In this document: piece after piece, positions 14,201 through 62,538 of the stretch
Layout of the letters: the number at the start of each line of letters is the position of its first letter
Position numbering within the stretch: position 1 is the stretch's first letter
Source: Monocercomonoides exilis PA203
Taxonomy: Eukaryota; Protista; Preaxostyla
Reading direction: 5' to 3'
DNA: 64,000 nt
NCBI GenBank assembly: GCA_001643675.2
Contig: LSRY02000030.1
Coordinates: forward strand, 868,001 to 932,000
Notes under the pieces: generated by a model
The model's database searches: none
Seen by the model: the letters and a program-made list of their open reading frames with translations, nothing else
What the model was told of the DNA's origin: nothing
Program-made: the position numbers and the translations under genes

Positions 14201-15326
14201 TTCTTCTCATTCTCCGCCTCAGATCTCCTTCTCTTCTTCCTCTTCCTCTTCTTCTTCCCTCTCTCTTCCATCTTCTTCTCCTTCATCATCATCATCTTCT
14301 TCTTCTTCCTCTTCCTCTTCCTCTTCTTCTTCCTCTCTCCAACCACCCTCTCAAAATAATCTTAATTCTGATCCAATTTCGTGCAGTCTTTTCAATCTGT
14401 CTGAAATATCTTCTCCAATCAGCTCATCTTCTCCTCAAATAATAATTCCGATTTCTCTTCCACCTTCTTCTCCCCCTTCTCCTTCTCCTTCTCCTTCTCC
14501 TTCTCCTTCTGATTCTTGTTCTCCTTCTCCTTCGATTTCTTTATCTGAGACAGACAACAATCTTTCTCTTTCTTCTTCTCTCTCTTCTTCTCCTTCTCTT
14601 TCTTCTTCTTCCTTCTCCTCCCTTTCTTCTGATATTCTTAGCGCAGAACATTCGTCTTTCTCTCAAATGAAGAATGTGATTGAGACAATCTCTTTGATTC
14701 CGTTCAGCCCTCTTGCTCAGACAGGTCACATGGCTCAGAAAGAGAAGGAAATGAAGAATATGAAAGATGTGAAGGAAGAGAAGGAGAAGGAGAAAGAGGA
14801 GAAGAAGGAGAAACAAATGCAGATGATGAATAATGAATTACCTCTCTCAACAACATCATCGTTATCATCGTCACTTTCATCTTCTCCTTCTCCTTCTTTA
14901 TCTTCCTTTTCTTCTCCTCAACCATCAACCTCTGCTTCCATGTCAACATCAGTCTCAACTTCAACATTTCAATCTTCCTCCTCCTCTTCTCCTTCTTCTT
15001 CTCCTCTTCCGTTCTCCTCTTCTCTCTCTGACACAACCATTTCTCTATCTTCGCCTTCTCCTTCTCCCTCTCTCTCCCCCTTTTCTTCCTCTTCCTTCTC
15101 CTCTCCTTCTCCCTTTTCTTCTCCCTTTTCTTCTTCTTCTTCTTCTTCTTCTTCTTCTTCCTCCTCCTCTTCTTCTTCCTCATCTCTTTCCTCTTCTCTT
15201 CTTCCCATCAGACCAAAACGTCCTTCTGCTCTTTTCTCCACCACACTCTCTCCAAGTGCCACTGCCTTCCATCCCTCAAAGCTGAAATCTTCTATCATCA
15301 AAAAATCACCTTATACAAAACATTCT

Positions 15327-15358
<32 letters not shown>

Positions 15359-26700: not shown

Positions 26701-26985
26701 ACTGATATCAGAGAGTACAACGGAGGCAAAATTTCTGGTGCATGTCTAATTAATAAAAAATAACATTTTTATTAAGATATTTACAAAAATTGCAGGAATT
26801 CAAGTGTTTTAAGAAATAATAAAAAATTTTTTAAACTTGACGCTGCATTTTGTAAATTTAGATAAATGATGTTTCAATCTTTTTAGAATAGGTGGGGATG
26901 TTTGTTTTTCATCGTTTGGAGCAGAAGATATTCCAACAGATATTTTAGTAAAGTCAGTAAGCGTGTTAAAAATTGAATCTTCCAT
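23742..26985 (-). CDS. ~1050-aa unknown protein: helical N-terminal domain plus a long Ser/Pro-rich disordered region (2 exons)
   Basis: The 995-aa ORF 23742..26729 extends in frame to an exon starting ATG at 26985 (MEDSIFNTLTDF...) through an ~90-nt GT-AG intron near 26746-26836. Confidence 0.7.
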
Positions 26986-33100: not shown

Positions 33101-36100
33101 AAGATCGAATTGGATTCAGGATATGAGCTTGCTGAGGCAGTTGGAATGACAGACTCCTTTGAATGGGAGATTTCATGTGCAACAAAAGGGATGGAAGTTG
33201 GGGTGAAAGCACCAGAGAATTTTGAGTCATCTTGTCTGATTGAGGTGTTGAGCAAATGCTCAATGAGAAACATCACGTTTTGCATTCCATCTGCTCTATC
33301 TGGTGCATCATCATCATCTCTGATTTCATCCAACTCCACACTCCTCACACTCACTGACTGTTCTGTTGTTTGCTCATCAGAGAATTCCATTGGATATTGT
33401 TTTGTGAATGCGATTGGGGGAAAAGTGAAAGTGGAGGGATTGGTGATCACAGAGACCTTGAGATTTGGAGAACATTCAGTGATTGAGTTTGGTGAAGGGG
33501 TGGAATCAGTTGTGTTTTGTGGATGTGAGGTGAACAACATTGAGAAGAGCAGTGGAGATGGAGGATGGGTGAGTGGAGTAGTTGGAGCAGAGGGGGATGA
33601 GGAGAAGAATGGGATGATTGTAATTGAATCGTGTGTTGTGAAGGGGTGCAGGTGTGTTGGTGGAAGAGGAGGAGGGATGAGTGTTTTGGTGAAGAGAGAA
33701 GGGAGTGTTGTTGTGAATGGGAGTTGTGTGATTGATGGGTGTGAGGCGAAGGGTTCAGAGGGAAGTGAAGGGAGAGGAGGAGGGATGATGATATCAGTGA
33801 GGAAGGGAGGGAGTTTGGAAATGAAGAATGTGAAATATTCAGGGTGTGAAGTGCCAAGAGAGGGTGTTGAGGAAGGAGGAAGAGGAATGGGAGGAGGGAT
33901 GTTTGTGAAGCTGGCAGATGAGATGGGGTCCTTTGTGATGGAAGGGATGGAATTTGAGGGATGTGATGCCTGGAAAGGGAAGAATGTGTTTGTTTCGGGA
34001 TGGGATCTGAGTGAGATTGCGAATGAGGAGCATCTGAAATGGGAGATTAAGGAAGAGGAGTTGGGATCATTGGATGAGTTGTGTGGGTGGGAGAGGAAGT
34101 CAACAGGAGAGGAGGGATATGTGATTCCACTGGTTGTGTATTTGTGGAGGAACTGGAGTGGGGATGGGTTTGTTTCGAAGGAGAAAGGAGGAGACTTCAG
34201 TGGGTGTGGGTATTCCGAGGCACCATGTTCATCGATTGATCACTTGATATCACTTCGATATCCAACACTTGGAGAAGGAGAAACACATATTTCCATTGTG
34301 GGATCAGGGTTGCTGAGCCATTCCATTTCATTTTCATCATCAATTTCAGAGTCACCAAAAGTGGTGATTGAAGGGACAAAGAAAGGGACAGGGGTGACGA
34401 TCAGTGATGAAGATGAGAATGATTTGTCTGATGATGGTTCAATGATATCATCGAATGTGAGTCTGTCATTTGTGAATGTGTCATTCACCAAGCCAGCCAT
34501 CACAACCCATCATTCAGTGTTGATTGAATCCTCTGGAGCAAACACATTATTGTCAGTGTCAGATTGTTCATTTGGCCCAGGGAGAGGGGTGGCAGAAAGT
34601 TTTGGATATTGTGTGATGAGAGTGAATGGGGGGAGTGTTGTGATTGAGAGGTGTTCGTTGAGCTTGATTTCAGAGTTGAAAGGGTTGATTGCGTTCAGTC
34701 CAAGTGCACACGAGGTGACACTTCAGAATGTGAACATCTCATTTGTCGATGTGACAGAGAGAAGTCTGATTTCGATGATGGAAGAGGAAAACCAGATGAA
34801 TGGGGAAAAGAAGGTGTTTTCAAATGGAAACAGACCAGTTCTGAGGGTTGTTGGGTGTTCATTTTCCAATATCACAAACGAAGGGATTGGAGCAAGTGTT
34901 ATTGATGTGGGATCATTTGAGGATGGAGTGGAGTGTGTGGTGGATGAGTGTTCGATGTCGAGTTGCAAGAGTGGTTTGAGCATTGAAGGAGGTGGGATGA
35001 GAGTGGTGCTGAAGAGTGGGGAGTCGGTGTTAAAAGTGAATGGGAGCTCGTTTTCGATGTGCAAGTGCTCGAGTGAGACAGGGTGTGGAGGAGGGCTGTT
35101 TATTGATGGATCTGACCCACATGCGAATTATGGAAATGAGAGTCAGATTCCGCCTCTGAATTTCAAGATTGTGAACATCCTGTTTGTGATGAATGAGGCA
35201 CATGTGGGGAAAGACATATTTGTCAGATGCCACTCGATTGCTCACCAGATCAACGAAACACTGTTTGCGCTGAACTACAACCAGGAGTCACTGAACTCGA
35301 ACAACTCGATCTATGGGAGGGATGTTTTGAGCGAGGGAGATGTTGATCTGATTCCGCTGATCACATTCTATTATTCGGCACAGGTGTTTGTGAATGGGAG
35401 AGGGAGTGATGGGAGGGGATGTGGGGCACAGAACAGTCCGTGTGTGAGCATTGACTGTGGGGTTGGGCACATCGAGGAAGGGGTGATGAATGCGATTCTG
35501 ATTGATGGAGAAGGGTTTGTGAGGAAGGAGTGTGTGATTGGAGATTTGGTTGTGAATTCATTGAAAAAGACACAGGGGATTGTTCGGCTGAACTCCAAGA
35601 TTGAGAAATCAGCAGAGAAGGATTGTGTGATGGAGTTTGTGAATGAATGTTCAGTGGAGAGATGCTCATTCCAGCTTGAAGATGGATTTGAGTCAGCTCA
35701 CAATTATCTCATGAAAGTGAAGAATGGAATGACAAAAATACAGGAATGTGAATTCTTCTCTTCCTCAACAACAGTTGAGCTCATGAAGTTGAACTGTTCA
35801 ATTGTGAGTGTGGAAAGTGGAGAGTTGAAGATATTTGATTCAACATTCAGAGATATTTATTCAACAAAAACAATTCTTTCATTCCATGAAGAATCGAATG
35901 TGACAATTGTTGAAACAAGAATATCGAATATCAATTGCGAGGGAGATGTTGTGAGTGTTGGAGGGAAAGCGAAAGTGGAGATGAAGGAAATGAAAGTTGA
36001 GAATGTGACTCTATTGTTGAAAGGGTGTGTAATTGGGATGGAAGAAGCTGAGCAAGAGGTGAGTGTGCTGAACAGCTCATTTGGGAGATGTGTGAATTCG

Positions 36101-38230
36101 GTTGATAAGGGAAGCATGATGCAGATCAGGAATTCCAAGGATGTGAGAATTGAGGCATGTGTGTTTGATGGAGAAAAAGAAATCGAGGTTATCAATGAAG
36201 AAAACAATAGAAAAGAGGGATTGTGCAAATGGAATTGGTCATTGGTTGGTGTTGAGAAGAGCAAAGTGGAGATGAGGGAAACAACGATTATGAAGAGCAA
36301 GGGAGGAGGGTTGTGGGTGAGTGGAGGGAATGTGAAGATTGAGAAAGGAGAATTTGAGAACAACAACCCATCAATTGAGGGATATCCATCAGCTCGAAGG
36401 AATGTGATTTGCGAAGGGGATGGAGAATTGGATGTTGTGAGTGTGAAAGGGGGAGATGGACTGAAAGATAACTCATCATTGTGGATATTGGATGAGGGAT
36501 GCGAATTGGGAGGGATAGCAACTGAAAGAGGATCATCATTTTTCATCCCCATTTTGGAAGAGGTAAAGAATGTTTCTCAACCAAATGGAGATGCTGAGTT
36601 GATGATTGCGGGAAAGTTGTTTCTGCCATGTGATTTGTCAGTGAAGATGAGCATGAAAAATGGAGATGAAGAGGAGATAGTGAGAAAGGGGATTGAAGAA
36701 GAAGGGTTTGTGTCAGAAAATGAGATTCACTCGGTTATTTCATGTTCAGAATGGGAGAAAGTGAGAGAAGAGACAGAAGTGAGTGTGTGGATTGTGTTTG
36801 GGAAAGCAGATTCCCCTTCATCAACAGAGCGACTTATTGTGAAGAACAGGAGTGAAAGTGTTGGAAAAGGAGATGAAAGAATTGTTGAAGGAGGGAAAGA
36901 AGTGAAATCATCATGGGCTGTTTTTTGTCTGATATTTGTTGTTTTGTTTTTGATCGTTCTGATTGGATTTATTTTGTTTGTTGTTCGGTGGAGAAAGCAA
37001 AAGAGAAGAACAAAGGAATTGGAGGAGATTGTGAATGACACAGTGAGGAAGGATCCAAAGGAATTTGAGATGGTGACAATGGAGATGTCACCAGAGGAGC
37101 AGTGGAGGAGAGCCGAGAAGGAGGCAGAGAAGAAGAATGAAGAGAGAATGAAGAAGAGGGTGTATGAGACGAACATGCAACATTCAGAGTCATCAGAGCA
37201 TTTGTTAAGTGAGTGTGGATCAACTGAATATATCCTTGGAAGAGATTCAGACAAGATTCCTCAATGGATGTTGGAGAAAGTGGATGAGGAAGAAGAAGAA
37301 GAGGAAACAAGAAAGAGAACACCATCACCATCAATTTCATCAAGTTCAACAACTGATTCAGATTCAACATTTGTTCGATCGGAGAGTCTGTGTCCAACCA
37401 CCTCATCGATGTCGAATCTGGTGGATGCAATGGCCTGCTCATCCCCTCATGAGAAGCTGATTGTAGATCTGAGAGATTCACTGTTCATGCTGCTTCATGG
37501 GAGGAATGAGAAGAAAGAGATGGCAATTGGCACTCTTCAGGAGAGGGAACAGACAGCTGCACAGATCCTGTTCTGGGTGGCCAATCTGGCACTCCATTCA
37601 TTTGACGAGATGGAAAATCCTCTTCAGTCATTATCCAGTTTGAGTCCTCACATTGTGCTGTTCTCTGAACACATGGTGATCTGCATTGTGATGCACTCTG
37701 ATCTCCTTTCTTCTGATGATTCAGACTCATCATCCATCTCTTCATCAACTGTTGTGACATCTGCTAGTGATGATGATAGTGATTCACTTCCCTCGTCTGC
37801 ATTTGAGGATGATGAATACAACAGAAAAGAGTGCCTGAGGTGGAAGGCACCAGAGCTGCTGATGAACAAGAAGATGGGAGCAACGAAGGAGTCGGTGGTA
37901 TTCTCGATTGGGATGATGTTGTGGGAGTGTTTGACATTGGAGATCCCATTTGGAGAGTATGAAGGGGAGGTGGCAGGGCAGAAGATTGTGAATGGGGAGA
38001 GGCCTGACATTGCAGCAATAAGTGGAAGCAGCTTTTCAGAAGTGTGGAAGCAAAGTGTTGGGATGGAAGCGTCAAACAGGCCTTCGCTTGTCTGGTTGAA
38101 AAGGGAGTTTTTCAAACATTTTCCGAAAGATGCAGTCATCATGACCGTGTCAGATGCCATTGACGATGAAGGAGATGATGAGCCTGGGAGTGCTGTTGAA
38201 GACACCAGTGTGACGTGGATTTCATATTGA
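30101..38230 (+). CDS. 2709-aa intronless receptor-like protein: signal-like N-terminus, Cys/Gly-rich beta-helix-like ectodomain, one TM, degenerate protein kinase C-lobe
   Basis: Repeated F..C.....GGG motifs and CG....PC motifs. TM WAVFCLIFVVLFLIVLIGFILFVVRW. C-terminal LRWKAPEL, VVFSIGMMLWE, IPF and RP match kinase subdomains VIII-XI; GxGxxG, VAxK, HRD and DFG are absent. Confidence 0.88.
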   Translation: MLSGVGMPVYSVFFLCVNLVATTGDSSWIGEKIEKEEMIKVDRNMLQINKNPSNDGLNNYEEDGGKLIDEMKRSENEGRDFHHDEEKSKEEYGREIGISKKADICQFSEIEGCLECFNSSVMEMGLILREKGTKRILIAKKGSIVSMKECILIVGKHSPPIELEGSFGSFLNISIQQNVEGLNEFPPLFTSGQFDNDISKSSIISLGESHFSSFCVSSTPFLSSHFIPLVSLSQLTFFNISSAPDSCSSPTTTSTQTTCMMNSCSFLSVCDAYDGGIVPSLNNPSASLTVSNTSFVGCSRTRNVECIGSESDKRHPERQNETTDGANSFIWCEWNGSKTTGKIDSWEDGVSSGGAINVFSSENGELFVSHCVFNGCVAYSRGGGIMCYSIRSFLIENSLFNECHAERHHGGGLYASYISLNTRISGCKFQNCNAFDYGGGLLLQLFQVSGTECIGAENWGGESTCLFDCSFSSCSVTHIYGGGIYCRHAPEQFKMRNIQFISCSAEREGGGLRIFPNQAARPSDGYYCCFLFFHECKCFINPSDGHDVMYYDRHNLFLSSGNPFYECYTTNTNEQRVCYGYWTSDWEYQNIEKKEWLKKGILNRFVSVRGGNSEEFCGANESYTCQTTGVAVIRSTTQTILMVTLMEGNHTSETTTIEIGEKKISVNGKGRTESSIGTGALSPTLALFSVTTGHLGLLHMKVDCNSNASPSPSVVFVSDGSGSLSLEDVVITTSNIGEYMISSSVFVVPLSQLSMVGVEIKDMNASEPLFTEPVLSSSSLSSSALFLTATASGESILANLSVKNVRLIEGDGVVAAKSVAEGETFVVQNVTIEDCESKNGSGGGIKVDLLSPTSKLQIDSATIKRCTSWKYGGGMMLYLADNSIDFSIVSVDFSGCSASLGGNYVFVNGSNSASWGISSSTLNVQHDESKYNELVGYDRSDTTMRLFPLNVYLDRYSDAAHVGKGKDGLGGYDSWFCGFDYYPCATITHAAQVRYPDTNKKIELDSGYELAEAVGMTDSFEWEISCATKGMEVGVKAPENFESSCLIEVLSKCSMRNITFCIPSALSGASSSSLISSNSTLLTLTDCSVVCSSENSIGYCFVNAIGGKVKVEGLVITETLRFGEHSVIEFGEGVESVVFCGCEVNNIEKSSGDGGWVSGVVGAEGDEEKNGMIVIESCVVKGCRCVGGRGGGMSVLVKREGSVVVNGSCVIDGCEAKGSEGSEGRGGGMMISVRKGGSLEMKNVKYSGCEVPREGVEEGGRGMGGGMFVKLADEMGSFVMEGMEFEGCDAWKGKNVFVSGWDLSEIANEEHLKWEIKEEELGSLDELCGWERKSTGEEGYVIPLVVYLWRNWSGDGFVSKEKGGDFSGCGYSEAPCSSIDHLISLRYPTLGEGETHISIVGSGLLSHSISFSSSISESPKVVIEGTKKGTGVTISDEDENDLSDDGSMISSNVSLSFVNVSFTKPAITTHHSVLIESSGANTLLSVSDCSFGPGRGVAESFGYCVMRVNGGSVVIERCSLSLISELKGLIAFSPSAHEVTLQNVNISFVDVTERSLISMMEEENQMNGEKKVFSNGNRPVLRVVGCSFSNITNEGIGASVIDVGSFEDGVECVVDECSMSSCKSGLSIEGGGMRVVLKSGESVLKVNGSSFSMCKCSSETGCGGGLFIDGSDPHANYGNESQIPPLNFKIVNILFVMNEAHVGKDIFVRCHSIAHQINETLFALNYNQESLNSNNSIYGRDVLSEGDVDLIPLITFYYSAQVFVNGRGSDGRGCGAQNSPCVSIDCGVGHIEEGVMNAILIDGEGFVRKECVIGDLVVNSLKKTQGIVRLNSKIEKSAEKDCVMEFVNECSVERCSFQLEDGFESAHNYLMKVKNGMTKIQECEFFSSSTTVELMKLNCSIVSVESGELKIFDSTFRDIYSTKTILSFHEESNVTIVETRISNINCEGDVVSVGGKAKVEMKEMKVENVTLLLKGCVIGMEEAEQEVSVLNSSFGRCVNSVDKGSMMQIRNSKDVRIEACVFDGEKEIEVINEENNRKEGLCKWNWSLVGVEKSKVEMRETTIMKSKGGGLWVSGGNVKIEKGEFENNNPSIEGYPSARRNVICEGDGELDVVSVKGGDGLKDNSSLWILDEGCELGGIATERGSSFFIPILEEVKNVSQPNGDAELMIAGKLFLPCDLSVKMSMKNGDEEEIVRKGIEEEGFVSENEIHSVISCSEWEKVREETEVSVWIVFGKADSPSSTERLIVKNRSESVGKGDERIVEGGKEVKSSWAVFCLIFVVLFLIVLIGFILFVVRWRKQKRRTKELEEIVNDTVRKDPKEFEMVTMEMSPEEQWRRAEKEAEKKNEERMKKRVYETNMQHSESSEHLLSECGSTEYILGRDSDKIPQWMLEKVDEEEEEEETRKRTPSPSISSSSTTDSDSTFVRSESLCPTTSSMSNLVDAMACSSPHEKLIVDLRDSLFMLLHGRNEKKEMAIGTLQEREQTAAQILFWVANLALHSFDEMENPLQSLSSLSPHIVLFSEHMVICIVMHSDLLSSDDSDSSSISSSTVVTSASDDDSDSLPSSAFEDDEYNRKECLRWKAPELLMNKKMGATKESVVFSIGMMLWECLTLEIPFGEYEGEVAGQKIVNGERPDIAAISGSSFSEVWKQSVGMEASNRPSLVWLKREFFKHFPKDAVIMTVSDAIDDEGDDEPGSAVEDTSVTWISY

Positions 38231-47646: not shown

Positions 47647-50600
47647 TTAAAAACTCCGCCCGCTCAAATGGTCAGCTTCAAGACCTGATGCTCTTTCGTC
47701 AAATACTAATTCGTCTTCATCAGATACAATTTCTCCAGTTTCTTCGGAATCATCATCCAGAATGATTGTACCTTTTGGTTTTGCTGATACAATTGGGCTT
47801 TTTGCATCAAATTTATCAATAGAATCTGTTTTGGAAGACTCATAAAATGAAGGAAGGTTCGTACGTTGGTTGAAGCATTCAGAAATATCGAGTGGGTGAT
47901 GCAACTTTCCCAATATCTTTTTCGAGTTTATTGGGGAACTTGAACACTGATATGAAGAAATCGGAGATGTGGTTGTTTCAGAAAGCGATGCTAACGCAAA
48001 GCTGTACGGGAACCTTTGCTGATACGTTCGCGTAATACGGCGGCTTGGCGATTGAGACACATATAGTGAAGGAATGTTGGGTGTGTGACTTGAATTTGAA
48101 GCCAGCATATCAACCGAAAATGATCTCATCTTTCGTTCTGATTTGCTGGATGCCCCTCGCTGAAGCTGCCTGTCTGTTTTATGGAACAGCTTTCGATATC
48201 TTGATGCTGCTGCCTCTTCTGCATCGTAATGCGCTTCTTTCTCTGTTCGACTTTTTGCTTTGAGTTCATTTACACTTTTCTCCTCCTTGCAATCTCCAAA
48301 AGTACTATCTGTATTTCTTTCATTGCCTTCTTTGCTTTCATCCCCTTCAAATTCTTTCTGCCTCTCTTTCTCCTTTCTCATTCTTTCTCTCATGAGAAGC
48401 TTTTGTTCAATAACATCCATCTTCTTCCAGTCATCTTCACTTAGAAGCGATGTACTTGTTGGCAAATGAACAAGAAAAGAAAGCGGAAGTGGTTCTGTTG
48501 GTGATTCTGGTCTGAGTATTTGATTAAATGCTCCTAAATTTGATTTTTGAGAAGCTTCTTCCTCAACTGATGAAGGATTAGATATTAACGAAGTCGATTG
48601 CATTCCGTAACTCTTCTGCTTTTTTGAACGGTTCTTCCTTTCATTTGATCCTTCACAAGCACCTTCTTCTTTTTGTTCCCAGTTGCCTCTGATCTGTCTG
48701 GGTGCTTGCCTTTGCCTTGGATTCTCCTCAGACAACGAACTGCGAAGATGAGAAACTGAACTCTTTGTTGCGTCATATTGCAAACGGATAGGAGACAACG
48801 ATGACTTTGAGCCTGAGCCATTCGAAGACATCTGCGAAGCATAAAATGCCTGCTTTTTTCTTTTCTGGTAGGCCAAAGCACCATCAATCAACTTTTCAAG
48901 ATTTGTTGTATTTCGGAAGGAGCGCAGAACTCTTTGCTGGAGTAACATATTCGAAGATGCTGGTAAGTCGGACTGATCGGGAATCTGTGATGCCATTCCA
49001 TCAGCAAATGAACTTTTATTTGATGACAAATCAAGAGAGGAATGAAGAGATATCGCTGGTGCTCTTTTTGAAGACAAAGATCCCAACTGAGTTGGACTTC
49101 TGACCGGAGGAAGAGCTTGCGAATTAGCAGCATTTTCGATTTTATTAACAGTTTTCTTATTCTTCACGCTCTTTTCTATACTCTCGATCACTTTTTCTGT
49201 ACTTCCCTTAGGCACCTTGAACTGAAACAACCCTTCGCTCCCTTTTCTAATCTCTCCGATTGTAATTCGCAGATCAGCTTCCATTTCCCTGAACATCGCA
49301 TCAGCTTCTGAACCAGCTCCTTCCATCCCTTCGATGTCCAAGCTCTTCCACTTCTGTTCGTCGATTCTCCGCTTCTCCGACTTTTGCGCCGCTTGCGAAG
49401 CAGACTTCTCAATAAACGAGATGATGGCGTGTGTTGTCTTATCCGACAACTCCAGCTGCTTCTCTTCAATCCGCTCGTCTTCCTCCACAAGCTGCTGGAA
49501 CTTGTGCTTCCACTCCGTCTCAGCCTGCGCTGCTTCTGCCTCCCGCCTCTTGTGCAGCCTCTTTTCTCTCTGCTTGATTCTCTGCTGGATCGTCTTCAAA
49601 TCATCATACTCTTTCGGCTGCTTCGACTGTTCTTGAGAGAATTCAGAAGGCTTTTCGCCCCGTTTCTTGGTGTTACCAATTCTTGGCTTTTCTTCTTTTT
49701 TGCTCTCATCATAATCTCCTTCGTCTTGCCATTGCCCTTCTGATCTTTCTGTTGCACTTTCATCTTCTGTCTCCTTCATTTCTATCTCATTTGAATCCCT
49801 TTTTCTGTTCCTCTGGTTAAAACCATCTTCGATAGCACTCTCGTCACAGTTCCAGAACTTATCTGATCTCGGCGTCTTTTCTGTTCCCAAAGGAGAGGAC
49901 AAAGCCGTATTCTCAGTGGATTTTTGTCTGAAAGAATTGCCTGTCTCTCTCAAATCACAAATATCTGTTTCATTTTGTCCATCAATAATCTTTTGTGCAT
50001 CAGTTTCATCAACAATAACATCCAATTCTTCTTCTCTTTCTTCCTCTTCAATCTCTTCTTTGTCCTCTTCTTCTTTTTCTTCATCGGCATCTTCAACAGA
50101 GTTCAATGTCTGCTCCTTTGAATCAAGTTCTGATATCTTCTGCTCATGTTTGGCATTTCGTGTGTTTGGACGTGTTCTTTCTTTGACTCGCTGACTTCTC
50201 AATTGAGACAGACGGCGCATTTCCAGCTGTCGAATAATCTGTTTTTTTATTTTCCCATACATAAAAACACAATTCAAATCAATTCAATCAAAGGCGAATC
50301 ATATCAATCAATTGCACGATGACGATATAATAATTTTGAGAATTGAGTTTCATTAAAAATGATTTCAGAAATAGAAATTATAATCAATGAATATTTCAGG
50401 ATAAAAAAAGACACAAATTAAGATGCAAACCTGCTCCGCATTGTCCCTCACTTTTTCATTGAAATGTTCTGTTTTTGTGTCGACGTTCCATTCGTCCGTT
50501 GCGAACTTCCCCAAGCACTGCCCCCAGATTGACCACAGCGATATCTCCTGTGTTTGTGTCCAGACAAGAATAGACTGCGGAACTGAGACTGGAAGATACG

Positions 50601-53600
50601 AATAGAGCACGCTTCTGTTTGCAGGCACGGGGCAGAAGCGAGAGAGCTCAACAACAGCAGGCTCATCAATCGCATCGTAGTTGAGATAAGACGAAGGAGA
50701 AGTCAAAGAACCAGAAGAAGAAGAAGAAGAAGAAGATTGAATGGATTGATTAGCCTTCGGAGACAGCTGAGATGCCGACTGTGAATTATTCATTGAGCGC
50801 CTCTTTTCTGAGTACTGAATGAAGAGTGTTGCATCATAAACAACAAGATCATTGTTCTCATTCAAACAGACAAGCAAATAGCATCCACCCACTGATGAAA
50901 TAAGAGAGGGATGCAGCATAGAGGAAGTAGGGCTAGTGGAAATGAAGGCATTTGCAGTGTTGGCAGTGCTGACTGATCGAGGAGAACGGGGCGACCGGGG
51001 AGAACGAGGGGAGCGAGAACGTGAGTGAGAGCGAGGGCGTGAACGAGAGCGGAGGGTTGAGCCGAGTGAAGGTGGATACAGCGCAGTCTGCTGGGAAGAC
51101 GATCTTTCTGTGGGCTGAGAAGGGGAAATAGTTCTTTTTGTTGCAATTGAAGTCGATTGAAAAGAAGAAGAGAATGTTGATCTGGGTGTTTGTGAAGCTT
51201 GTGCTTGAAAGGAGGCCTGCTGGTTGGTTGGGAGAAGGAAAGAAGGCTGTCCAGCAGAAGAGAAGAAATTAGAAAAAGGCGATGAAGATCTTCTTTGTGA
51301 CTTGTTTTGCCCACTTTGCGAGGAAAGAGAAGAGGAAAGAACAGACATTGTTTCTGTGAAATCTTCCACTCCTTCAAAAGAGAAGTGAGGAATGTTCTGA
51401 TCACCCAATGAAGCAGGCGACGAACTCAAAGAAGAAGCCATTGAAGCTTTCCATGCTTCCAAATAAGGATGAGGAGTAACACAGCTTGGCGGTGTGGTCA
51501 GCGCTGATATGCTCATAATTGCTGCTTCTGTCGTCTCTTCAGCTGCATTCTGCGATGATCGTGTTGGAAGCTTACTTGTGCTTGTTTTGGATGTGCTTTC
51601 CTGTTGTTGTTGTTGCTGTTGCTGCTGTTTGATTGAGTTTTTGAGGAGAAACGAGTGTTGTGGAAGAGTCTTGTGTGAATGCTGCTGTTGCTGTTGAAGT
51701 TGCTGCTGAAGCTGTTGTGATGTTGAGTTCTGTTCATCTGCCTCAAATTCCTCTTCTTCTGCGCGTGATCTGTCTCTTCTCATCCTCCTGCTCTTCCTCT
51801 TCACCACTTTCGTGCGTGTCTTGATGACCTTCAGCACTTGCATCGATTTCAGATGGATCAACGCAATGTCTCCGCCAGTCAGCAGCACTGCCACAAACAT
51901 CGTCTTGTCAATTGCTGCCACGCTCATCGCCTTCTCTTCCATCTGCTTCCCTTCTGACAGGCCAAAGGTGTCTGCATTCCACACACACAGTGTCTCTAAT
52001 TCACTTGGTGCCACCAGCCGAGTCATCTCAGCAGAATAGGCGACGCTGGCTGTGATGGAAGAGGCAGTGTTTAAGACGCGGATGAGTGACAGGCCTGTTT
52101 TGCGGTCGACACTCCAGACAGACAGCTGAGGGTGAGAAGAGAGAGAAGAAGAGGTGGCAAGAGAGGAAGAAGAAGGGGAAGTAAAAGAAGACAAAGTATT
52201 TGAAAGTGAAGAAGAAGCAGAAGAAGAGCCGTTTGATGGGATAAACACGACAACAGCGTGTGAGCGGGGGATGTAGCAGAGCTGCTCCACGTCTTTGTCT
52301 CCTGCACTCACCACAGATGTTGTCTTCCCTGTTGTGTAATCAGCCAGCCCGACTCTTCCGTCTGCTGTGCCGTATATCACCCCCATCCCCGTGTCAGTCA
52401 CTGCAAGCTTTGTTATCTCCCTCTCGCTGAATGAAGAGTAATACTTGTCTAATTTCCCATCAGCCAGCTTGTATGTCGCCAGGTCGCAGCTCGATGCCAC
52501 AAGGAACGTGCAGAAATGGTCGTTAAAGACGACATCTGCAATGGCTGTGTTTCCCACTCGTCCAACCTCTGCACTCTGCTCTGGATTCACTTGCACAATC
52601 TGTGAGGAGGCCATTGACAGCTGGAGAGTGTCGCTGTTGAAGCAGAAGGAGGTGAACGTCATCGGAGGAGCACCACAGCTCAGCATCGCAGCTTCGCTGC
52701 GCATTCTGAGAGAAATACAACAAAGAAATATATGCATAATTGTAAAAAAAATAAAGAAAGAAAAATTCCGCTTTAAGATGATATTCTAAAATTTGTTCTC
52801 TCATTCCTTCAACATTTCTCCTTTATCTTAGAAAATATTATTAATATTTCTTTCATCACTCTTTTTGTATCCAATCCATTCGCACACAAACGCAAACGCA
52901 ATCACACCTTGAATCCGAATTCGCACTTTCATTCTTTTCCTTTGAGCTAACACTTGCAAATGCTGTTGAAGCAGAAATCGTCTGCAAACAACTGAAAATG
53001 CGCAAGTCCCATACTTTTATAATCCCTCCTGCATCCACAGAAATGAGCAAAGGAGCCGTCTGCAACGCCACCAGATCCAAAATTGAGTATGTGTGTCCAG
53101 TCAGTCGTGTGATAGGCTGCTTGATCAGAGGATTCCACATCATCACATCCCTCTCAAACCCCCCCGAAAACAGCAGATGTGTGTCAACTGAGTACGAAAG
53201 TGCCCTCACCCCCTTTTTGTGCGCGGTGAGTGTGTTCTTCTGTGCCAGCTGTTCCACATCCCAAATCTTCACTGTTGTGTCGAGGGAGGCAGAGGCGAGC
53301 ATAGAAGTGCCTGAGAGAAAACAAAGGGAAGTTACCCAGTCCGAATGGAGGGGAGGCGTGCGGGAGGTGAAATGGGAGGAGAAGGGGGATGAGGAATGAA
53401 AAGCTGATTGGGAAGAGAGGGAACGGGAGTGAATGGTGGAGAGACGAGTGGGAGAAGAAGAGAAAGAGGAGAATGACATGGGAGATGCGGAAGAAGATGA
53501 GAGAGAAGAGGAAGAAGCAGAAGCAGAAGCAGAGGAAGGATAATGTGACTGAAATGAGGAGTGGTCAGTTGAAAGAGCATTGAGGCTGTTTGTCGAAGAT

Positions 53601-55849
53601 GATTGAGTTGTGCTTATTTGGATGAGTGGAGTTGAAGCAATGAATTGAGCGTCCAATGAAATGGAAGTGGGGTGTGTGACATGAGGATGAGATGGAGAAT
53701 ACAACGGAATCTGTTTGAGTGTCTGTGACTGTGTCTGAGAATGATGGAGTGAATTGGTAGAAGCAGAAGATGAGGAGGAAGATAGAGAAGAGGATAATGA
53801 AGAAGAAGAGGAGTAATTCTGTGATGTGGAAAGAAGGCTCTTCTGAAGTGGAGAGAAAGGGAGAGGTGAGGATGAAGTGTTGACTGGAGTGATGGAAGAG
53901 AAATCGGATGAGTTGGAAGCAGATTGAAGTGAATTGGAGACATATGGAGAGAGCGGAAGAGGAGATGACAATGAAATGGAAGAGGAAGAAAAAGAAGAAG
54001 AAGAAGAAGAAGAAGCAATCTTTGAAGAAGGGCTGAAACGAGAATAGTCAGAATTAGTGGAAGAAGGCGAGGTGATGTTTGAGAGAGCATTGGGCGAGGC
54101 AGGAGAGCAGTAAAGAGATGAATGTTGATTGGCAGCAGAAGGAGAAGACAGAATGTGTGGATGTGTGTGAGATGATAAGGAAGGTGATTGCGTTGAAGAG
54201 AAAGGAGAAGGAGAAGGCAATGAAATGAGCGGAGAAGAAGACTGAAGTGAAGCTGGTGAACGAGTTGGCGAAGGGAAATAGGCAGATTCTGAGAGAGGCA
54301 TGGGCGAACGGGCGAGGGAATCTGAAGAAGAGTCGAAATGAGAAACAGAAGGAGAAGGAGAAGAAGATTGAGAAATGATGGGAAGAGGGGTGGTGTGCCC
54401 AGAACGAGGAGAAAGAGATTTGTAGGAGGTTGTTTGTTGGAATGTTGCATCAATCTTTTTGAGCTGGGGGAAATAAAAATAAAATAAAAGAGAAAAGAAG
54501 AGAAGAGAAGAAGAAAAAGAAAGAGGATTGTTGAAATGAATGAAGAAGAAGTAATGAAATTTTCACAATTAGCAATTGAATTAAAAATACAGTTAATTAA
54601 TGACAATATGAAAATGAGGATGAAGATACAAGTTCACACAGCATCAGCGTCAAAGAGATGGATGTTTCCGCACTGCCCTCCCGAAAAGAGGACCGTCTTC
54701 ATCTTCGGCTTCTCCAAAGACGAGCGATAAATTCTGCTGTCTGCTTCAATTCCACTCCTCACCGATGGATCAATCCCTTCCATCATCCCCAATTCCTTTC
54801 CCGTTGCACTCCCATTGCTTGATGCATCTCTCCTCTTTCTCTCTCCGTCTTCGTTCAGCCCAGTTTTCCTGCTTAAATCAGAAGACGAGCGAACAGAGGC
54901 GATTGACGAGGCTAATTTGGAGACGGCACTTGCTTCGTCAAAGTTGGATGAGGAAAAACACATCTGAGCATAAGGAAGCGGAAGCGTCTTCAGCTTTGTG
55001 TGCGCGTTAAGAGACCAAAAGGAAATCGTGCGGTCAACAGAAGCTGTGACTATCGTTTTGCTATTTGAAAGGTACTCTTGAGTTTTTGTATTATAAAAAA
55101 AATATTTAATTTTCATTGGAGAAGTTGGCATTAAAAAAATAAGTCACAAACTCAGGGCAGTTATAGAAGCATCATGCGCTAAGAAAGAATCAGAAAGCGC
55201 CCAGGAAGTGGAATCCCAGTAGTTGACATTTCCATCTCTGTGTCCTGTGATAAAACGTTTTGATTCAGGAACATATATCATGCAATCTGCGTCGCTTCGA
55301 ATGTGTCTGTCAAAAACTCGTGGCATCGTTAAATACTATTAATGCGTTCAAATTATTCATAAATTTTAATTTTTATTTCATTTGATTCATATTTAAAGAA
55401 TGATACATTTGGCAAAGACTGTCCGTTATCTCTGACAACATTCGTTCCACGTGCAACAAGGAATGCAGAAACATCTTTCCAAAAAATCTTTTTTGTGCAA
55501 TCAAGGTCTATTTGATTGAATAGTTCTGCAATCTGAGCAATTGTTGTTGAGTTCAATTCTTCGCTTCCGTCCAGAAGCAATTGATGAATAATTATAATAA
55601 ACTATGCAAAAAAGAAACATTAGAAAATTAAATGAGGTTTTTAACTCTTTGTTTACTAAATGTTTATTAAAGAAAACCTGTGGAAGGTCTACTCCTTTTG
55701 TCCCATGTCTGTCAAATTCCTTTTTAATAATTTCATATTTAATTGGTTCGAGCTTATAAAATCGTGATATAATAGGCTCTATATCATAATAAAGGTATAT
55801 CAATCAGGATAAATTTTAAAATGTAAAAAACACTACCGCTCCAATCCAT
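47647..55849 (-). CDS. Multi-exon EF-hand plus WD40 protein (WDR49/WDR64/EFCAB8-like) with Ser-rich inserts and a long charged C-terminus
   Basis: N-terminal ELFNQIDLDCTKKIFWKDV is EF-hand-like. WD blades include TGHRDGNVNYWD, TASVDRTISFWS, HSDWVTSL..SASLDTTVKIWD, HKKGV..SGGFERDVMMWNP and LTGH..IKVWDLR..CLQTI. About 8 exons are separated by AT-rich GT-AG introns. The first exon and the joining of the last exon are less certain. Confidence 0.75.
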
Positions 55850-56040: not shown

Positions 56041-59000
56041 ATGACTGATGACAATAGATCAATGAGCTCCATGGCGAGCGGAGTTACTGTAGATTTGCGT
56101 CAGGGCGATGCATTTTCGAAATTTGATACAGTTGTGTATTCTTTGCTCTATCCTTTGTACAATCAAACAAAACACCCGCCTACAGAATGGGCTGTATTTT
56201 TATGGATTGTGCAATTACTTCAAATGATCACTTTAAGTTTTTTTCGAATTGATTCTGATGGCAAAACAGTTAACAAGATCTCATACGTTTGTAATTGCTT
56301 TAAAAATTTTTAGAAGCATTCTTCCAATTTTTATTTCTTATTCATTTTTATATAGTATATTTGCTGGCTTGATGGAACATCATTAAGCTTTCTTGCAGAT
56401 AAATATATTGCATTTGTTGTTATTGGAATTTTTGGATATCTTGTACTTCTTATCTCATATGTTCTTATTTGCGCAGTATTTTTTCGATTGATAATTTCAT
56501 CCCAACCGTGGGTAATTTCTGTATTACGGTGGCTTGTTGAATTTACTCTTTCAGTATTATACATACCAATGATATCAATTGCTATAACTTCTTTTGATTG
56601 TTATGAATCGTCACAAAATGTGTTCTTGCATCGAATTTTCGATGGGGCGTGCTTTGGAAGTACTCTTACATTGATTGGAGTTGTATTTGGAATTATATTT
56701 TTGATAGTCGTGTTTTTTTTTCAGTTTTTGGTAAATAATGCGATATTCTCGCATAGTCCAAAACATGGAAACCTTTGGGCATCTCCAAGTGGATTTTCTC
56801 AGGGGATTATGTGGACTTTGATCGATGGTATTGTGTTTGCGATGAGAACATTGCATGGATGGCCTTTCTGGAGAGGAGTTGTGACTGTTGGCACTTCGTT
56901 GGTGATGGTGGTGTATTATGTGTGGAAGCAACCGATGTACAAACTAAGAAGCAATGCGATGAGAGCAAGCGAGTGGATGATATTCGGATGTCTGCGCCTT
57001 TGCGATGAGATCGGTTATGCTGTTGAAAAAGCTACAAATTCGTTCATTCCAACAATTGCATTTCAAGTTGCTGGTTTGATTCTCGGCATCGTTGGTTGCA
57101 TTGTCTGCTACAAAATAGCGCAACGGCTGCAAAAGCGCCGCTTCCTTCTCACTGATTCTGGAAGCCCGATCATTGACATCACCTCCGAAGATCGAACCAG
57201 ACAGCTTCCTCCTCTTAAAAACGCAGCCAAAGTGGAACCTGCCCTTCGTTTCTTGCAGATGCACCGCTATCGCTCGCTGGAGTATTTCATGTATGCAGAT
57301 CTTGTCTTTGGGCAGGCGCTGAAGAAGCACCCGCACGACAGTCAGCTGAGCTTTGTGTATGCAGCCTATCTGAACGACTTCATGAAGAACTGGATGAAGT
57401 CGCAGAGTGTGCTGCGGTCAGCGCGGCTGAGCAATCCAGACTTCTTTCTGCGGTTTGTGCTGTTCTGCAAGACGAAGGAGAGCAACGTGGGCGAAGGCGG
57501 AGGGAGCGGAATAGGGAACGGTGGGCCAGGAGGAATGAGCGAGCTGAATTCACTCACTTTCACTTCTCTCTTTGCAAAGGCAGAGGAGCACCACGAAATG
57601 GCAGTGAGCTCAACGAAGGAGCTGTTTGAGAATTTGACCTCACCACACCCGCAATTCTCGCAAATTCCTGTTATTCTGCAGTCGATTGTGATGAATGAGA
57701 AGCAGTCCCGCACTTGTTACGAGGAGTTAATTGCATCGCATTCACAGAACACGAGTGTGCTGCGAAACTACGCGCGTCTGCTTTTGGACATCTACCACGA
57801 CGAAGATACAGCAGACATGATTCTGAACAGAGCAGATCAGATTGAAGAGGACTCATCAACATCGTCTGGCCCAGCCATCTCAGCTGGAGTGGGTGACCCT
57901 TCAGCATCATTACAAATGGATATGAACGGAGAGGCGGAACAGGGCGCAATGGGGGGATTGGGGATGAGCGGGGCACGTGGAGGGACAGGAGAGGAGACGG
58001 ACGAGAGAACAGGGAAGGAAACAGGAGGAGGAACTGGAGAAAAAGAATTATTTATAAATGATGGGCAGATGCAAAGCACATCTAAATTGGAGAATGTGAA
58101 CTATGAGAATAAGAGGAGGAGGAGAGACGGGACGATCAGTGGAGGGTCCATCGTCACAAATGGGTCAGTTGGCAAAGCAGCAAAGAGGAAGCGGAAGAAA
58201 AAGAAGAAGAAGTCAGACACGATTCTGACAGAGTTGACGGGCGGCGGGCAGAGCAGCTCGTCGACGATGAATGCGATCACAGCGACGCTTGTTTTCTGCC
58301 ATTTTCTAGCGATTATCATCTTCATTGTGGTTGTGGTGACATACGAGTCGATGGCGAGCGAGTACTCGTCTGGTCTGAACATCCTGCGGAAAGTGTGTGA
58401 TCTGACGATGACGATTGGGCAGGTGTCTTCTTCAGCGCTGCAGTACTTTGTGCACGACGTGATCAGACACTGGGTGCCTCCCCCCGCGGACGGGTGGGCG
58501 ACGTCGCTGATGAATGCAGAGATGCTGAAGACGAAGCTGACGACACTCAGCAGCTGGATGGCAGACATGGCGAATCAAGTGTACTCCCTCACCAGCTACG
58601 TGGAGCACTGGGAGACGCGAGACATTGACGTGTATGTGTTCACACTCACGCTGAAGAACGAGACGCAGCCGGACGGTACAGTTGTGGAAGTGGAAGACAG
58701 GAAGACGCAGATCTCGTCGCCGATGACTCTTATGCAGACGCTGACAACGATGAGCAACATGGCGCGCCTTCTGTCTGAAACGACGTTCAATTCGAGACCA
58801 ACATACTACAGCTACTTCAGCGATCTGCTGTTTTTGTTCTTCAACCCCATCATCCCCATCATGGACGGGTGCAGACGAGCAATCACGGCAGACTGGGACA
58901 ATCTGAATGAGAACTGCAACAAGATCATCATTGTGTGTGTGACGATTGTGGTGTTCTTTACGCTGCTGATTGGTGGAGTGCTGCTGTTTATCTACGCAGC

Positions 59001-62000
59001 GATGACGACATATGCGAAGAAGGAGAGGCAGAGATCGTACAGAACAATGCTGAATGTGCCAAAGGCGAAGATGCAAGGCGTGATCAGGAGGCTGATGAAC
59101 AACGACGACAACGAAGAGACAGCAGAGATGACAGATTACTTGTCGCAGAACACACACAAGATGAATGACGAGGCGATGAGTGACATGCATCTGAAGCAGG
59201 AGGAAGACTACGACGATGTGGTGGATCTGTCAGAGGACGATGAAGCACTCAAGAAAGTGGAAAGAAGAAGATCGCCAGCTATTTCAAATACGCCTCATTC
59301 ATTTAAGAGGAGTGGATCGACAGAGGAGAGTAATAATAATAACAATAACAGCAATAACAGCAATAATAGTGGAAGTATTTACAATAACAGACTGACAGGT
59401 GAGCTGACAGAAGAGTCTGATCAGAGTGAAGATGAGAACAGGAATGGAACAGAAGACGAGAACAACACGAAAGACACAAGAGGAAGAGGAGGAAAGAAGA
59501 AAAAGAGAGAAAGAGAGAGTGGAAGCGACGAAAAGAGCGAGAAGGAAAAAATCAGAGAAAACGGGCGTTTCAGTCCAAAATCGAACAAAGACGCTTCAAA
59601 TTATGCGCAACAGGCATCTGAATCATCTATTGTTTCTTCTTCCTCGCCTGCCATCCAGCCATACGATGTGTCACAGACAGGCAGCCCCAACCAGCGCCAC
59701 GATTCGTCTTCAAACTCGATTTCTCCGCGGAACATTTCTCCGACTTCATCTTCAATCACATCTGCGCAATCAGCTGTATCTCCATCGTGTTCGTCTCCTT
59801 CTTCACCAAAAGTTGCGCCTCTTTCATCTTCTTCGTCATCATCTGCTTCTTCTTCCACCACCAGTCTAACTTCGCCCAAGCGCCAGAAACAAGCAAACAA
59901 TCTTATGTCATCACTTGGGCAGTCTCAGAATTGCAGCTCTTCCACAACCACACTCACCACAACTGTCATCGACCCATCTTCAGATCTCATTGGAATCAGC
60001 AATAACACTAACAATAATAATAATAATAATAATAACACTTCCTTATCTCCCACAGTCACTCCTCAGATGTCCTCTGCTTCACTCTATCAGTACCCCAGCG
60101 CCCGCTCTCCAAAGACGACGCTGTCTGCCTCCTCAACAATAGCCTCTCTTCAGACAGTCCTCACACAGCAGCCGTATTCCCTCAGTTATTCTTCTGCTGT
60201 TATGCCCACTGCACAGCTCCCCTCTGCATCTGCGTTGTCGTTCACACCATTAATGAATGAGAGTGCGAAAATGTCACCTTATCTCAACACAATCTCTGAC
60301 GATCATTCGTCTCCTCTGATGGGCTCTGCACGCATGCTCCCTCATTGCACAGGCAGTAATAACAATAACAATAGCAATAATAATAATAATAGCAATAATA
60401 ATAATAGCAATAACTCAAATGGCATATCGAATGAAAGCACACGCACAGACATGCTGCACTTCGGAAACGTTGGCGATGGTTCGAATGGAGATGAGAATGG
60501 CATTTCACACACAATCCCTTCTTCCATTCTCGGCCACTCTGCATCTACTACCTCATCGATCACGCCAACTTCACAGGCACAGCAGCTATTGCAGCAGCAG
60601 TACCAGATGAAGAACTCAAACTCCATCGTGTTCCAGCAGCACCCCATCCGCTCCACCACATCTCCTTCACTCGGGATGATGGTGAGACAGTCTGCTTCAC
60701 CCAGAAACCAATCAATGCGTTCTGCCTCTCCTCTCTCCACTGCTGTCTCTGAGCTCTCACAATCAAAGTCTCAACTGCATTTGAGCGCCTTTGCGGGAAC
60801 AGCAGCAAATTCGGCTTTTGCTTCGCCGTATGCTTCTGCTCAGCATCTTCCTTATATTCATCCACCGACTGTGCAGCCAGTCACACCCACACCTTCAACG
60901 CAACAGGGAAGCTCAAACGGAACATCGAATGGAGGGAATTACAGTGGAAGCACGCAGAACTCATCATCAGACTATGCATCAAGTGGGAACAAAGGAAAGC
61001 AGATAACTTCTTCGAAAGTGTTGACAAGTGTTCTGTTTGACGACGATGAAGAAGAGAACGAGAAAGCGCTGGGTTTTGTGCGGAATGCGGTGGAAGACAA
61101 AGAGTGGGAGGAGAAGATGGAGAGCGACATTTCAAAACTACAGGAGTCGTTTGCAGCTTTGCCATCTCCTGTGTCGAAGATGCTCATCTTCCACGTGGTG
61201 TGCAACATGCTCCTGTTTATTGTCGCCATCTGCATTGAGATCGTTCTCATTGTCTCCTTCGTCATCTCATACAAGGAGATCTCTATGAACATCGTGCTGT
61301 CGGGGATGAGGCCCTCCATCCTCTTCCAAATTCAGTATCTTCTCCTCCGCGCGCTGTTTCCCAGCCCGATTCTGCAGACAGACCAGTCCGTCGTGTTCAA
61401 AGAGTCCACAAACCCGATCCTGTACAATTCTACTTTCACATCCACCAACCAGACGTATATAATTGACTTGCTCCATTCAGAAATGGACTATTTCCAGGCG
61501 CTGCATTCGAAGTGTCAGTACGGGCAGAGCGAGACAAGCCACACGAACGACACGATTTTCGACTCGATTGAAGCTTCAAGGCTGTCAAAGGAGCAGAACA
61601 TTGCGATTCTGTTGGAGGAAAGAGAGTGTTTCAATGCAACCAGCGAGGACTGCTCGGGAGCAGTGAGGTATCGGATCTATGGAGTGGATGGGATGATTTA
61701 TGGATTGTCGATGCTGATATCGCGGATGAGGCTGAATGTGGAGAGGCTGAAGGGGATGGATGCGACGAAGCTGACGATGATGACGAAGGAGGTGAGGTAC
61801 ATTTTGTCTGCGATTCGGTATGACCTGCAGGAAGGGATAAGCAAGCTGACGAATGACATTCTCTCAGAAGGAGTGAAGAAAGTGCAGCAGTCGATAACGT
61901 ATGTGGTGATCTTCACGATCGTTGACATTATCATCATCATCTTCAGCTTGTTCTTCAACTCACTCTCGTGGAGGAGGATTGTGTGCGACATGCGCGAAAT

Positions 62001-62538
62001 ATCTGAAAAATTGCTGCTTTTGCTGCCAATCAACGAGAATGCAAGGGAGATTGTGATGATGCCATCGATGTTGACTGGGGTGAAGGAGTTGGACGATGGG
62101 AGAGAGAAGATATTAGAAGCAGCACAGCAGCTGCTGGATGCGATTAAGAACAGAGAAGGAAGTGAGGCAGTGAATGCGCTGATTAAGCAGCTGATGCAGG
62201 TGACGAAGCGGCAGTTTGACGAGGAAGAAGGGACGATGGCGAAAGTGGAAGGGCAGATGGGAGAAGAAGCGATCAAAGAGCACAAAAAGGAGCATCTGCT
62301 GTTGAGGCAGCGAATGACGTTGATTGGCGACCAGATCAAATCGAGTGACGAGGCAGCGTCGTCGACAGGGATGCACATTTTGACGTCGCTTTTTGATGCG
62401 CATTTCACAGACGATGATGTTGTGTTTGGGGAAGTGCTGCTGGCGAACGGGACAAGCTCTGTGTTGGGCGTGTCTGTCAACATGGATCCATCATCATCAT
62501 CTTCTTCTTCTTCCTCTTCTTCTTCTTCTTCGTTGTAA
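56041..62538 (+). CDS. 2142-aa TmcB/TmcC-like multipass membrane protein with TPR-like region and C-terminal hemerythrin-like domain (2 exons)
   Basis: Exon 56041-56286, phase-0 intron 56287-56355, exon 56356-62538. About 9 N-terminal TMs (incl. YIPMISIAITSFDC). TPR-like segments ADLVFGQALKKHP and CYEELIASHSQNTSVLRNYARLL. Two TM-ectodomain-TM modules, then TGVKELD..QFDEEE..EHKKEH..AHFTDDD. Confidence 0.85.

Follow-up and report, generated by a model that had tools for sequence, protein, structure and literature searches.

A gene on the + strand at 56041-62538 of a 64,000-nucleotide stretch of Monocercomonoides exilis PA203 DNA (contig LSRY02000030.1, positions 868,001-932,000; this whole stretch is called the window here) encodes a TmcB-like multipass membrane protein of ~2140 aa that ends in a hemerythrin-type domain. 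This tail has lost the half-site for the O2-binding iron (Fe2), where Arg replaces the first histidine, and has kept the half-site for the other iron (Fe1), a pattern that it shares with a class of oxymonad relatives referred to below as the Arg class. On balance, we favor the reading that an oxymonad TmcB-like membrane protein with a tail of this class carries one metal at the former Fe1 site and has a regulatory role, without reversible binding of O2.

The hemerythrin tail and its ligand pattern

The hemerythrin-fold domain lies at 62032-62466 on the + strand (145 aa modelled) and starts ~20 residues past the last transmembrane (TM) segment. An earlier note, drawn from the letters of this DNA, had placed a degenerate hemerythrin domain at the C-terminus, and the sequence following the last TM segment reads as quoted there. 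Profile, profile-profile, and structural comparisons returned both a hemerythrin match and a four-helix bundle. Scanned alone, the tail matches the Pfam Hemerythrin model (PF01814) at 62104-62418 with 28.9 bits (E 1.7e-6, cut-off 25.3); a six-frame genome scan gives 29.3 bits. When a profile of 33 close relatives was compared by hhalign with 12 single-domain canonical (HHEHHHD) hemerythrins, presumed bacterial and taken from the matches of the Arg-class profile search described below, the two aligned over 129 columns with 99.7% probability (E 1.6e-25), gapless apart from a 4-residue loop insertion particular to the 62032-62466 copy.

The predicted structure agrees with these matches. The AlphaFold2 (AF2) model of the tail (predicted local distance difference test score, pLDDT, 95.1) superimposes by VIA-align on the hemerythrin domain of the Desulfovibrio vulgaris receptor DcrH (DcrH-Hr) over 134/134 residues, with Z 17.6 and a root-mean-square deviation (rmsd) of 1.8 Å. 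Ranks 1-14 of this comparison are all hemerythrins, and unrelated helical bundles reach Z <=13.2. Because the Foldseek E-values for hemerythrins are weak (3e-3), we judged the fold by the TM-scores (0.79/0.86) together with the VIA-align Z. A phmmer search of the tail against PDB recovered no hemerythrin; the designed helical-repeat proteins found there by sequence (E ~1e-7) were set aside as compositional matches of Glu/Lys-rich helices. Taken together, the model and the profile matches indicate that the tail is a genuine hemerythrin fold, homologous to hemerythrin.

In canonical hemerythrins, Fe2, the O2-binding iron, is bound by the first two His, from helices A and B, and Fe1 by three others, the HxxxH pair of helix C and a single His of helix D; Glu and Asp form bridges between the irons. 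In the tail, with residues numbered on 62032-62466, the seven corresponding positions are R24, Q61, E65, H84, H88, H124, and D129 (R-Q-E-H-H-H-D), and the ligand columns agree across three mappings, namely the paralog alignment, the Arg-class alignment, and the hhalign comparison with canonical hemerythrins. All three give the substitution that the earlier note had read from the sequence, with Arg and Gln for the first two His and the other five ligands kept. Arg24 (62101-62103) and Gln61 (62212-62214) occupy the Fe2 His positions. Glu65 (62224-62226), His84-x3-His88 (62281-62295), and His124-x4-Asp129 (62401-62418) provide the three Fe1 His and both bridging carboxylates. The Fe2 half-site has therefore lost both His while the Fe1 half-site is whole, and the seven-ligand H-H-E-H-H-H-D set of a di-iron, O2-binding hemerythrin is incomplete. 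One helical turn past His88 stands a further motif, Arg92-Gln93-Arg94 (RQR; 62305-62313), which is specific to the Arg class and invariant in it.

Conservation of the Arg class and its putative metal site

Our Arg-class alignment comprises 33 tails of the R type, which come from M. exilis, Blattamonas, and one JGI metagenome fragment. Fourteen of its columns are invariant (D21, R24, F62, E65, E66, M69, H84, H88, R92, Q93, R94, H124, F125, and D129), and the 62032-62466 copy has all 14 residues. The earlier note had looked to paralogs for conservation of the remaining His, Glu, and Asp, and these are indeed fixed throughout the class. Column 61, on the other hand, is free (V, Q, T, I, A, Y, S, or E) and mostly hydrophobic. 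The Streblomastix copies P0038 and P0044 show the same ligand and RQR pattern. RQR is missing from canonical paralogs and from canonical non-oxymonad domains, except for the second domain of P0085 and P0151. In a maximum-likelihood tree, a branch supported at 92/98 separates the Arg class from the other sequences, and within the class the 62032-62466 copy is a lone early branch. Since Blattamonas sequences nest among the M. exilis paralogs, the class is older than the divergence of the genera.

That the complete Fe1 ligand set is strictly conserved despite an overall identity of 35-48% among Arg-class domains argues that a metal is still bound at the Fe1 site. A fixed Arg that faces the core needs buried counter-charges, and only the two carboxylates that formerly bridged the irons are conserved as such, from which we infer a mononuclear site. 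Judging from this conservation, one metal ion would sit at the former Fe1 site, held by three His and the carboxylates. The buried guanidinium of Arg24 would occupy the place of Fe2, paired with those oxygens of Glu65 and Asp129 that are left free, and the pocket once open to O2 would be filled by residue 61, which is mostly hydrophobic. Reversible O2 binding is not expected of such a domain. It may instead act as a cytosolic regulatory module that signals metal occupancy or oxidation state; alternatively, it may relay a conformational change from the adjoining TM-loop-TM sensor.

The same residues could also be read as a metal-free pseudo-hemerythrin, a structural or docking bundle that might, for example, pair with canonical-site paralogs and in which His, Glu, Asp, and Arg form a buried network of hydrogen bonds and salt bridges. 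Both Fe2 ligands are gone, the core has a fixed, cationic Arg, and the invariant RQR may serve as a docking surface; in addition, degenerate Hr-like subdomains free of iron are reported in plant BTSL2 (PMC12022348). We nonetheless regard this reading as unlikely, because the three Fe1 His and both carboxylates do not vary among the 33 domains or in Streblomastix at so low an overall identity, and a single Arg is unable both to compensate two carboxylates and to satisfy three His.

Still less do the ligand columns suit a site that has remained di-iron and reactive to O2 or NO, with Fe2 held by substitute ligands (Gln61, Asp63/Glu64, and water). The 62032-62466 copy does have Gln61 together with acidic residues at 63 and 64, and altered ligand sets are compatible with a di-iron site, as mycobacterial hemerythrin-like proteins (HLPs) and RIC proteins show (PMC6993866, PMC9268430). 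However, most class members have Val, Ile, Ala, or Thr at position 61, which leaves the class without a common substitute ligand, and the invariant Arg at the Fe2 His position would repel a second cation. This makes a di-iron site very improbable.

Several observations weigh against the mononuclear, regulatory reading that we prefer. The Pfam Hemerythrin match falls to 22.4 bits in the context of the full ORF (open reading frame), under the cut-off of 25.3. The 62032-62466 copy is somewhat aberrant within its class, with the 4-residue insertion in its B-C loop and with Glu78 where >=90% of the Arg class has Tyr. Furthermore, three tails inside the Arg class bear His at position 24: L045 (C2:90960-91325), L067 (C58:1644262-1644657), and L068 (C58:1199973-1200347), with HVEHHHD or HIEHHHD as their ligand set. 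The first Fe2 ligand has apparently reverted here, and position 24 is evolutionarily labile, given that three nested copies carry His again. Finally, the term "receptor" is taken from the architecture of the protein, since no kinase, cyclase, or MCP (methyl-accepting chemotaxis protein) output domain was recognized in it.

The gene belongs to a large family. Scans of the 82.3-Mb, 101-contig assembly of M. exilis, in which the window is contig 26, found 69 TPR_TmcB loci and, with a family profile, 62 hemerythrin-type matches; these form 59 pairs on the same strand, 2.7-8.3 kb apart, so that 59/69 TmcB loci have a tail. The Pfam Hemerythrin model itself gives 16 matches in the genome, all within the TmcB-hemerythrin family, and no stand-alone hemerythrin was found. 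The canonical set HHEHHHD is present in 8/62 tails, one of them a pseudogene. About 30/62 carry R-x-E-H-H-H-D, and the remainder mostly have the first His and lack the second. Across all tails, E, H3, and H4 are each retained in at least 59/62, and H5 and D in ~55 each. Three near-identical canonical tails lie on one contig (C47:119103-119510, C47:218996-219397, and C47:471013-471420; L023, L024, and L022); one of the three has an in-frame TAG and one lies in an ORF of only 522 aa, which looks like a recent segmental duplication with decay.

In databases, the closest proteins are M. exilis entries named "uncharacterized protein MONOS_..." (up to 45-53% identity), followed by Blattamonas nauphoetae and Streblomastix strix. 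The organism is thus an anaerobic gut protist, as the earlier note had supposed. That note had also known of no description of this architecture. We found no paper on a TmcB-Hr family or on the Arg substitution, and the literature on TmcB gave nothing relevant; yet with ~60 paralogs and representatives in three oxymonad genera, the architecture is no one-off. A regional word search with the tail gave no match, which reflects a limitation of its index rather than absence, as later searches recovered many relatives.

To follow the distribution of the class, we searched 1.84 billion representatives in full with HMMER, using the Arg-class profile, and examined the best 150; the design leaves room for canonical-site TmcB-Hr fusions in other protists, such as the "long" hemerythrin proteins of Naegleria (PMC4919030). 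Twenty-eight proteins match at E<=1e-30. Among the best 150, all named proteins with R-x-EHHHD and RQR come from Monocercomonoides, Blattamonas, or Streblomastix, and the rest are unnamed short contigs. Going by these searches, the TmcB-hemerythrin family has so far been found only in oxymonads. Its largest subclass is the Arg class. The members share one layout: a membrane bundle at the N-terminus, TmcB TPR repeats that would be cytosolic, a pair of TM-helical loop-TM modules, and a hemerythrin fold that begins ~20 residues beyond the final TM segment.

All of the long non-oxymonad matches that were checked (7/7: P0066, P0080, P0090, P0102, P0115, P0078, and P0070) are bacterial sensors without TPR_TmcB that end in tandem canonical hemerythrins, two in number and once three. 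Upstream of these, five have a SpoIIE phosphatase, one has an MCP signalling domain, and one has HAMP-GAF-PAS only. Outside the oxymonads, nothing lies nearer to the Arg-class profile than these proteins, whose architectures may be of the donor type. Within the oxymonads, one Blattamonas nauphoetae homolog, P0016 (3353 aa), is already annotated as "putative hemerythrin" and contains two complete TmcB-hemerythrin units. Its tails lie at residues 1496-1629 (HQEHHHD) and 3190-3331 (RVEHHHD), and a new N-terminal membrane region follows the first, so P0016 probably represents two adjacent genes fused by annotation.

Gene model, architecture, and neighboring genes

The region 56041-62538 holds a single protein-coding gene on the + strand, with its ATG at 56041 and its stop codon at 62536-62538. 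Both limits are those given in the earlier note, and the model requires one in-frame intron besides. Exon 1 (56041-56286; 82 aa) provides the N-terminus and a first hydrophobic segment (aa 50-70), as read from the ATG ORF, hydropathy, and RNA contigs. The intron (56287-56355) is 69 nt long, a multiple of three, and bounded by GT..AG; an in-frame TAG at 56311-56313 sits inside it and is removed by splicing. Exon 2 (56356-62538) encodes 2060 aa plus the stop in a frame that is open throughout. In our searches, the two exons served as separate queries rather than as one joined protein.

RNA contigs span 56200-62199, with zero differences save one skipped repeat of Asn codons. They cover exon 1 over 56200-56286 and match exon 2 with 0 differences over 56356-60351 and 60420-62199. 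The spliced joint 56286>56356 is present in one contig from each of four runs of one study. Because the RNA contigs of all four runs carry this joint, the TmcB-hemerythrin gene is transcribed and spliced, which rules out a pseudogene or non-gene reading of the region.

The protein has the TmcB-like multipass scaffold that the earlier note had recognized. TM segments were located by a Kyte-Doolittle hydropathy scan, a simple method rather than a dedicated TM predictor. An N-terminal membrane bundle (56389-57123) comprises at least four strong hydrophobic segments (exon-2 aa 12-51, 59-78, 96-133, and 228-256), with weaker ones between. It is followed by TmcB-type TPR repeats (PF25474) at 57553-57858, which match TPR_TmcB with 55.3 bits against a cut-off of 27 (58.2 bits at the same place in the own-genome scan). 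The order of the two, PF25474 repeats downstream of a multipass membrane region, is that of the TmcB/TmcC family.

Further downstream, a first TM-loop-TM module (58261-59016; exon-2 aa 636-887, by hydropathy) encloses a loop of ~180 aa. It leads into a low-complexity linker rich in Ser and Asn (59017-61164; ~715 aa, S 21%, N 11%) with short codon repeats. Asn/Ser codon repeats (AAT/AAC/AGC units) occupy 59335-60413 of this linker, and RNA assemblies break or skip there. A second TM-helical loop-TM module (61165-61974; exon-2 aa 1604-1873) has a loop of ~200 aa with Cys and N-x-S/T sites, and its last hydrophobic segment, at ~61882-61974 by hydropathy, precedes the hemerythrin tail. The ORF closes with a poly-Ser tail encoded by a TCT repeat and the stop codon (62500-62538; ORF reading and tandem-repeat scan). 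Provided that the TPR repeats face the cytosol, the parity of the TM segments would put the linker and the hemerythrin tail on that same side and both loops on the extracellular side.

In an AF2 model of the second module (m449e9000d71e; pLDDT 87.9), the TMs extend as long helices into a helical bundle. Searches of a structure Atlas gave weak matches of this module to bacterial PilJ/HAMP/4HB sensor modules (TM-score 0.35-0.54, leads only), and a match to a parabasalid PAS-bearing cluster falls in the same range and is likewise only a lead. Against PDB, Foldseek returned nothing convincing, just high-rmsd matches to the flagellar junction. A Pfam scan detected no PAS, cyclase, kinase, or MCP domain in the protein, in keeping with the earlier note, which had recognized neither PAS nor cyclase. 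The four Guanylate_cyc loci of the genome adjoin no TmcB locus.

This architecture also bears on whether the protein is a receptor at all. It might be a transporter, a channel, or a scaffold whose tail merely regulates stability or trafficking, in the manner of the iron-dependent degron of FBXL5. The Pfam scan found no enzymatic output domain, no known fold has been assigned to the N-terminal multi-TM bundle, and scaffolds typically contain long disordered linkers such as this one. On the other side, both TM-helical loop-TM modules weakly resemble bacterial sensor modules (a lead only, given the TM-scores above), and nothing speaks for transport. We consider a non-receptor role quite unlikely.

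Other ORFs of the window lie outside this gene. Just upstream and on the opposite strand, ORFs at 52856-54301 (-) and 54634-55131 (-) belong to a WD40 beta-propeller gene that is probably split into exons. In a 2709-aa ORF at 30101-38230 (+), Pfam matches only the C-terminal end, where part of a protein kinase domain scores 29 bits. The regions 11490-17477 (+), 23742-26729 (-), and 47647-52737 (-) hold further large ORFs of 1995, 995, 876, and 790 aa, none of which matches a Pfam family at E<=1e-5.

Relation to known systems and meaning for oxymonads

A bacterial membrane receptor that ends in hemerythrin is already known in DcrH of D. vulgaris (PDB 2AVK, 2AWC, and 3WAQ). DcrH is, as the window protein would be, the membrane receptor of an anaerobe with a cytoplasmic, C-terminal hemerythrin of the bacterial type, and DcrH-Hr is the best structural match of the tail, N-terminal extension included. 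DcrH, however, has all seven di-iron ligands, an MCP signalling domain, and 2 TMs, whereas the window protein lacks the Fe2 His and has ~12 TMs on a eukaryotic TmcB scaffold. No Pfam match to MCP signalling (PF00015) or HAMP precedes its hemerythrin at E<=1, which sets it apart from DcrH-type chemoreceptors. If its tail relays conformational change, the window protein would be functionally analogous to DcrH while standing outside the DcrH family. In a published survey, MCP-Hr is the commonest hemerythrin fusion (PMC4919030).

The best non-oxymonad matches, bacterial proteins of the types SBP_bac_3-PAS-GAF-SpoIIE-Hr-Hr and HAMP-MCPsignal-Hr-Hr, likewise place hemerythrin at the C-terminus of a sensor, but differ from the window protein in their canonical HHEHHHD sites, tandem copies, recognized output domains, and lack of TPR_TmcB. 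Closer to home, canonical-site paralogs in M. exilis (for example C35:289551-289958 and C25:57506-57910) have a homologous tail at the same position on the same TmcB scaffold. They differ in having all seven ligands and neither the Arg nor RQR, and share 15-23% identity with the tail of the window protein. Dictyostelium TmcB and TmcC, the source of Pfam PF25474, resemble it in their TPR_TmcB repeats behind an N-terminal membrane region, a comparison made by Pfam match only; the PF25474 family model does not imply a hemerythrin tail for them.

Among eukaryotic proteins, FBXL5 and plant BRUTUS use an Hr-like bundle as a cytosolic iron or redox sensor and not as an O2 carrier, and BTSL2 is reported to have one subdomain without a di-iron center (PMC12022348). 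FBXL5 and BRUTUS nevertheless differ in that they are soluble E3 ligases and have di-iron sites; their sequences are only distantly related, and neither is among the structural matches of the tail.

Little is known about how anaerobic protists without mitochondria sense oxygen, iron, or redox stress. The M. exilis genome paper presents hemerythrin only as an oxygen-stress gene derived by lateral gene transfer (LGT) (PMC6759080), and hemerythrin is not mentioned in the Preaxostyla genomics paper. Our results correct the published view in which the "hemerythrin" of M. exilis is simply an enzyme of oxygen stress: all hemerythrin domains detected in this organism sit at the end of TmcB-like proteins, and many have lost the O2-binding half-site with the other half intact. 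More tentatively, and as a possibility well short of probable, the Arg class may be a hemerythrin-derived signalling domain with a mononuclear 3-His/2-carboxylate site, in which an invariant Arg would permanently replace the O2-binding iron and through which dozens of receptors of oxymonads, eukaryotes without mitochondria, would link cell-surface events to the cytosolic status of iron, redox, or small anions. The analysis marks the proteins of this large receptor-like family as candidates for environmental sensing in these protists.

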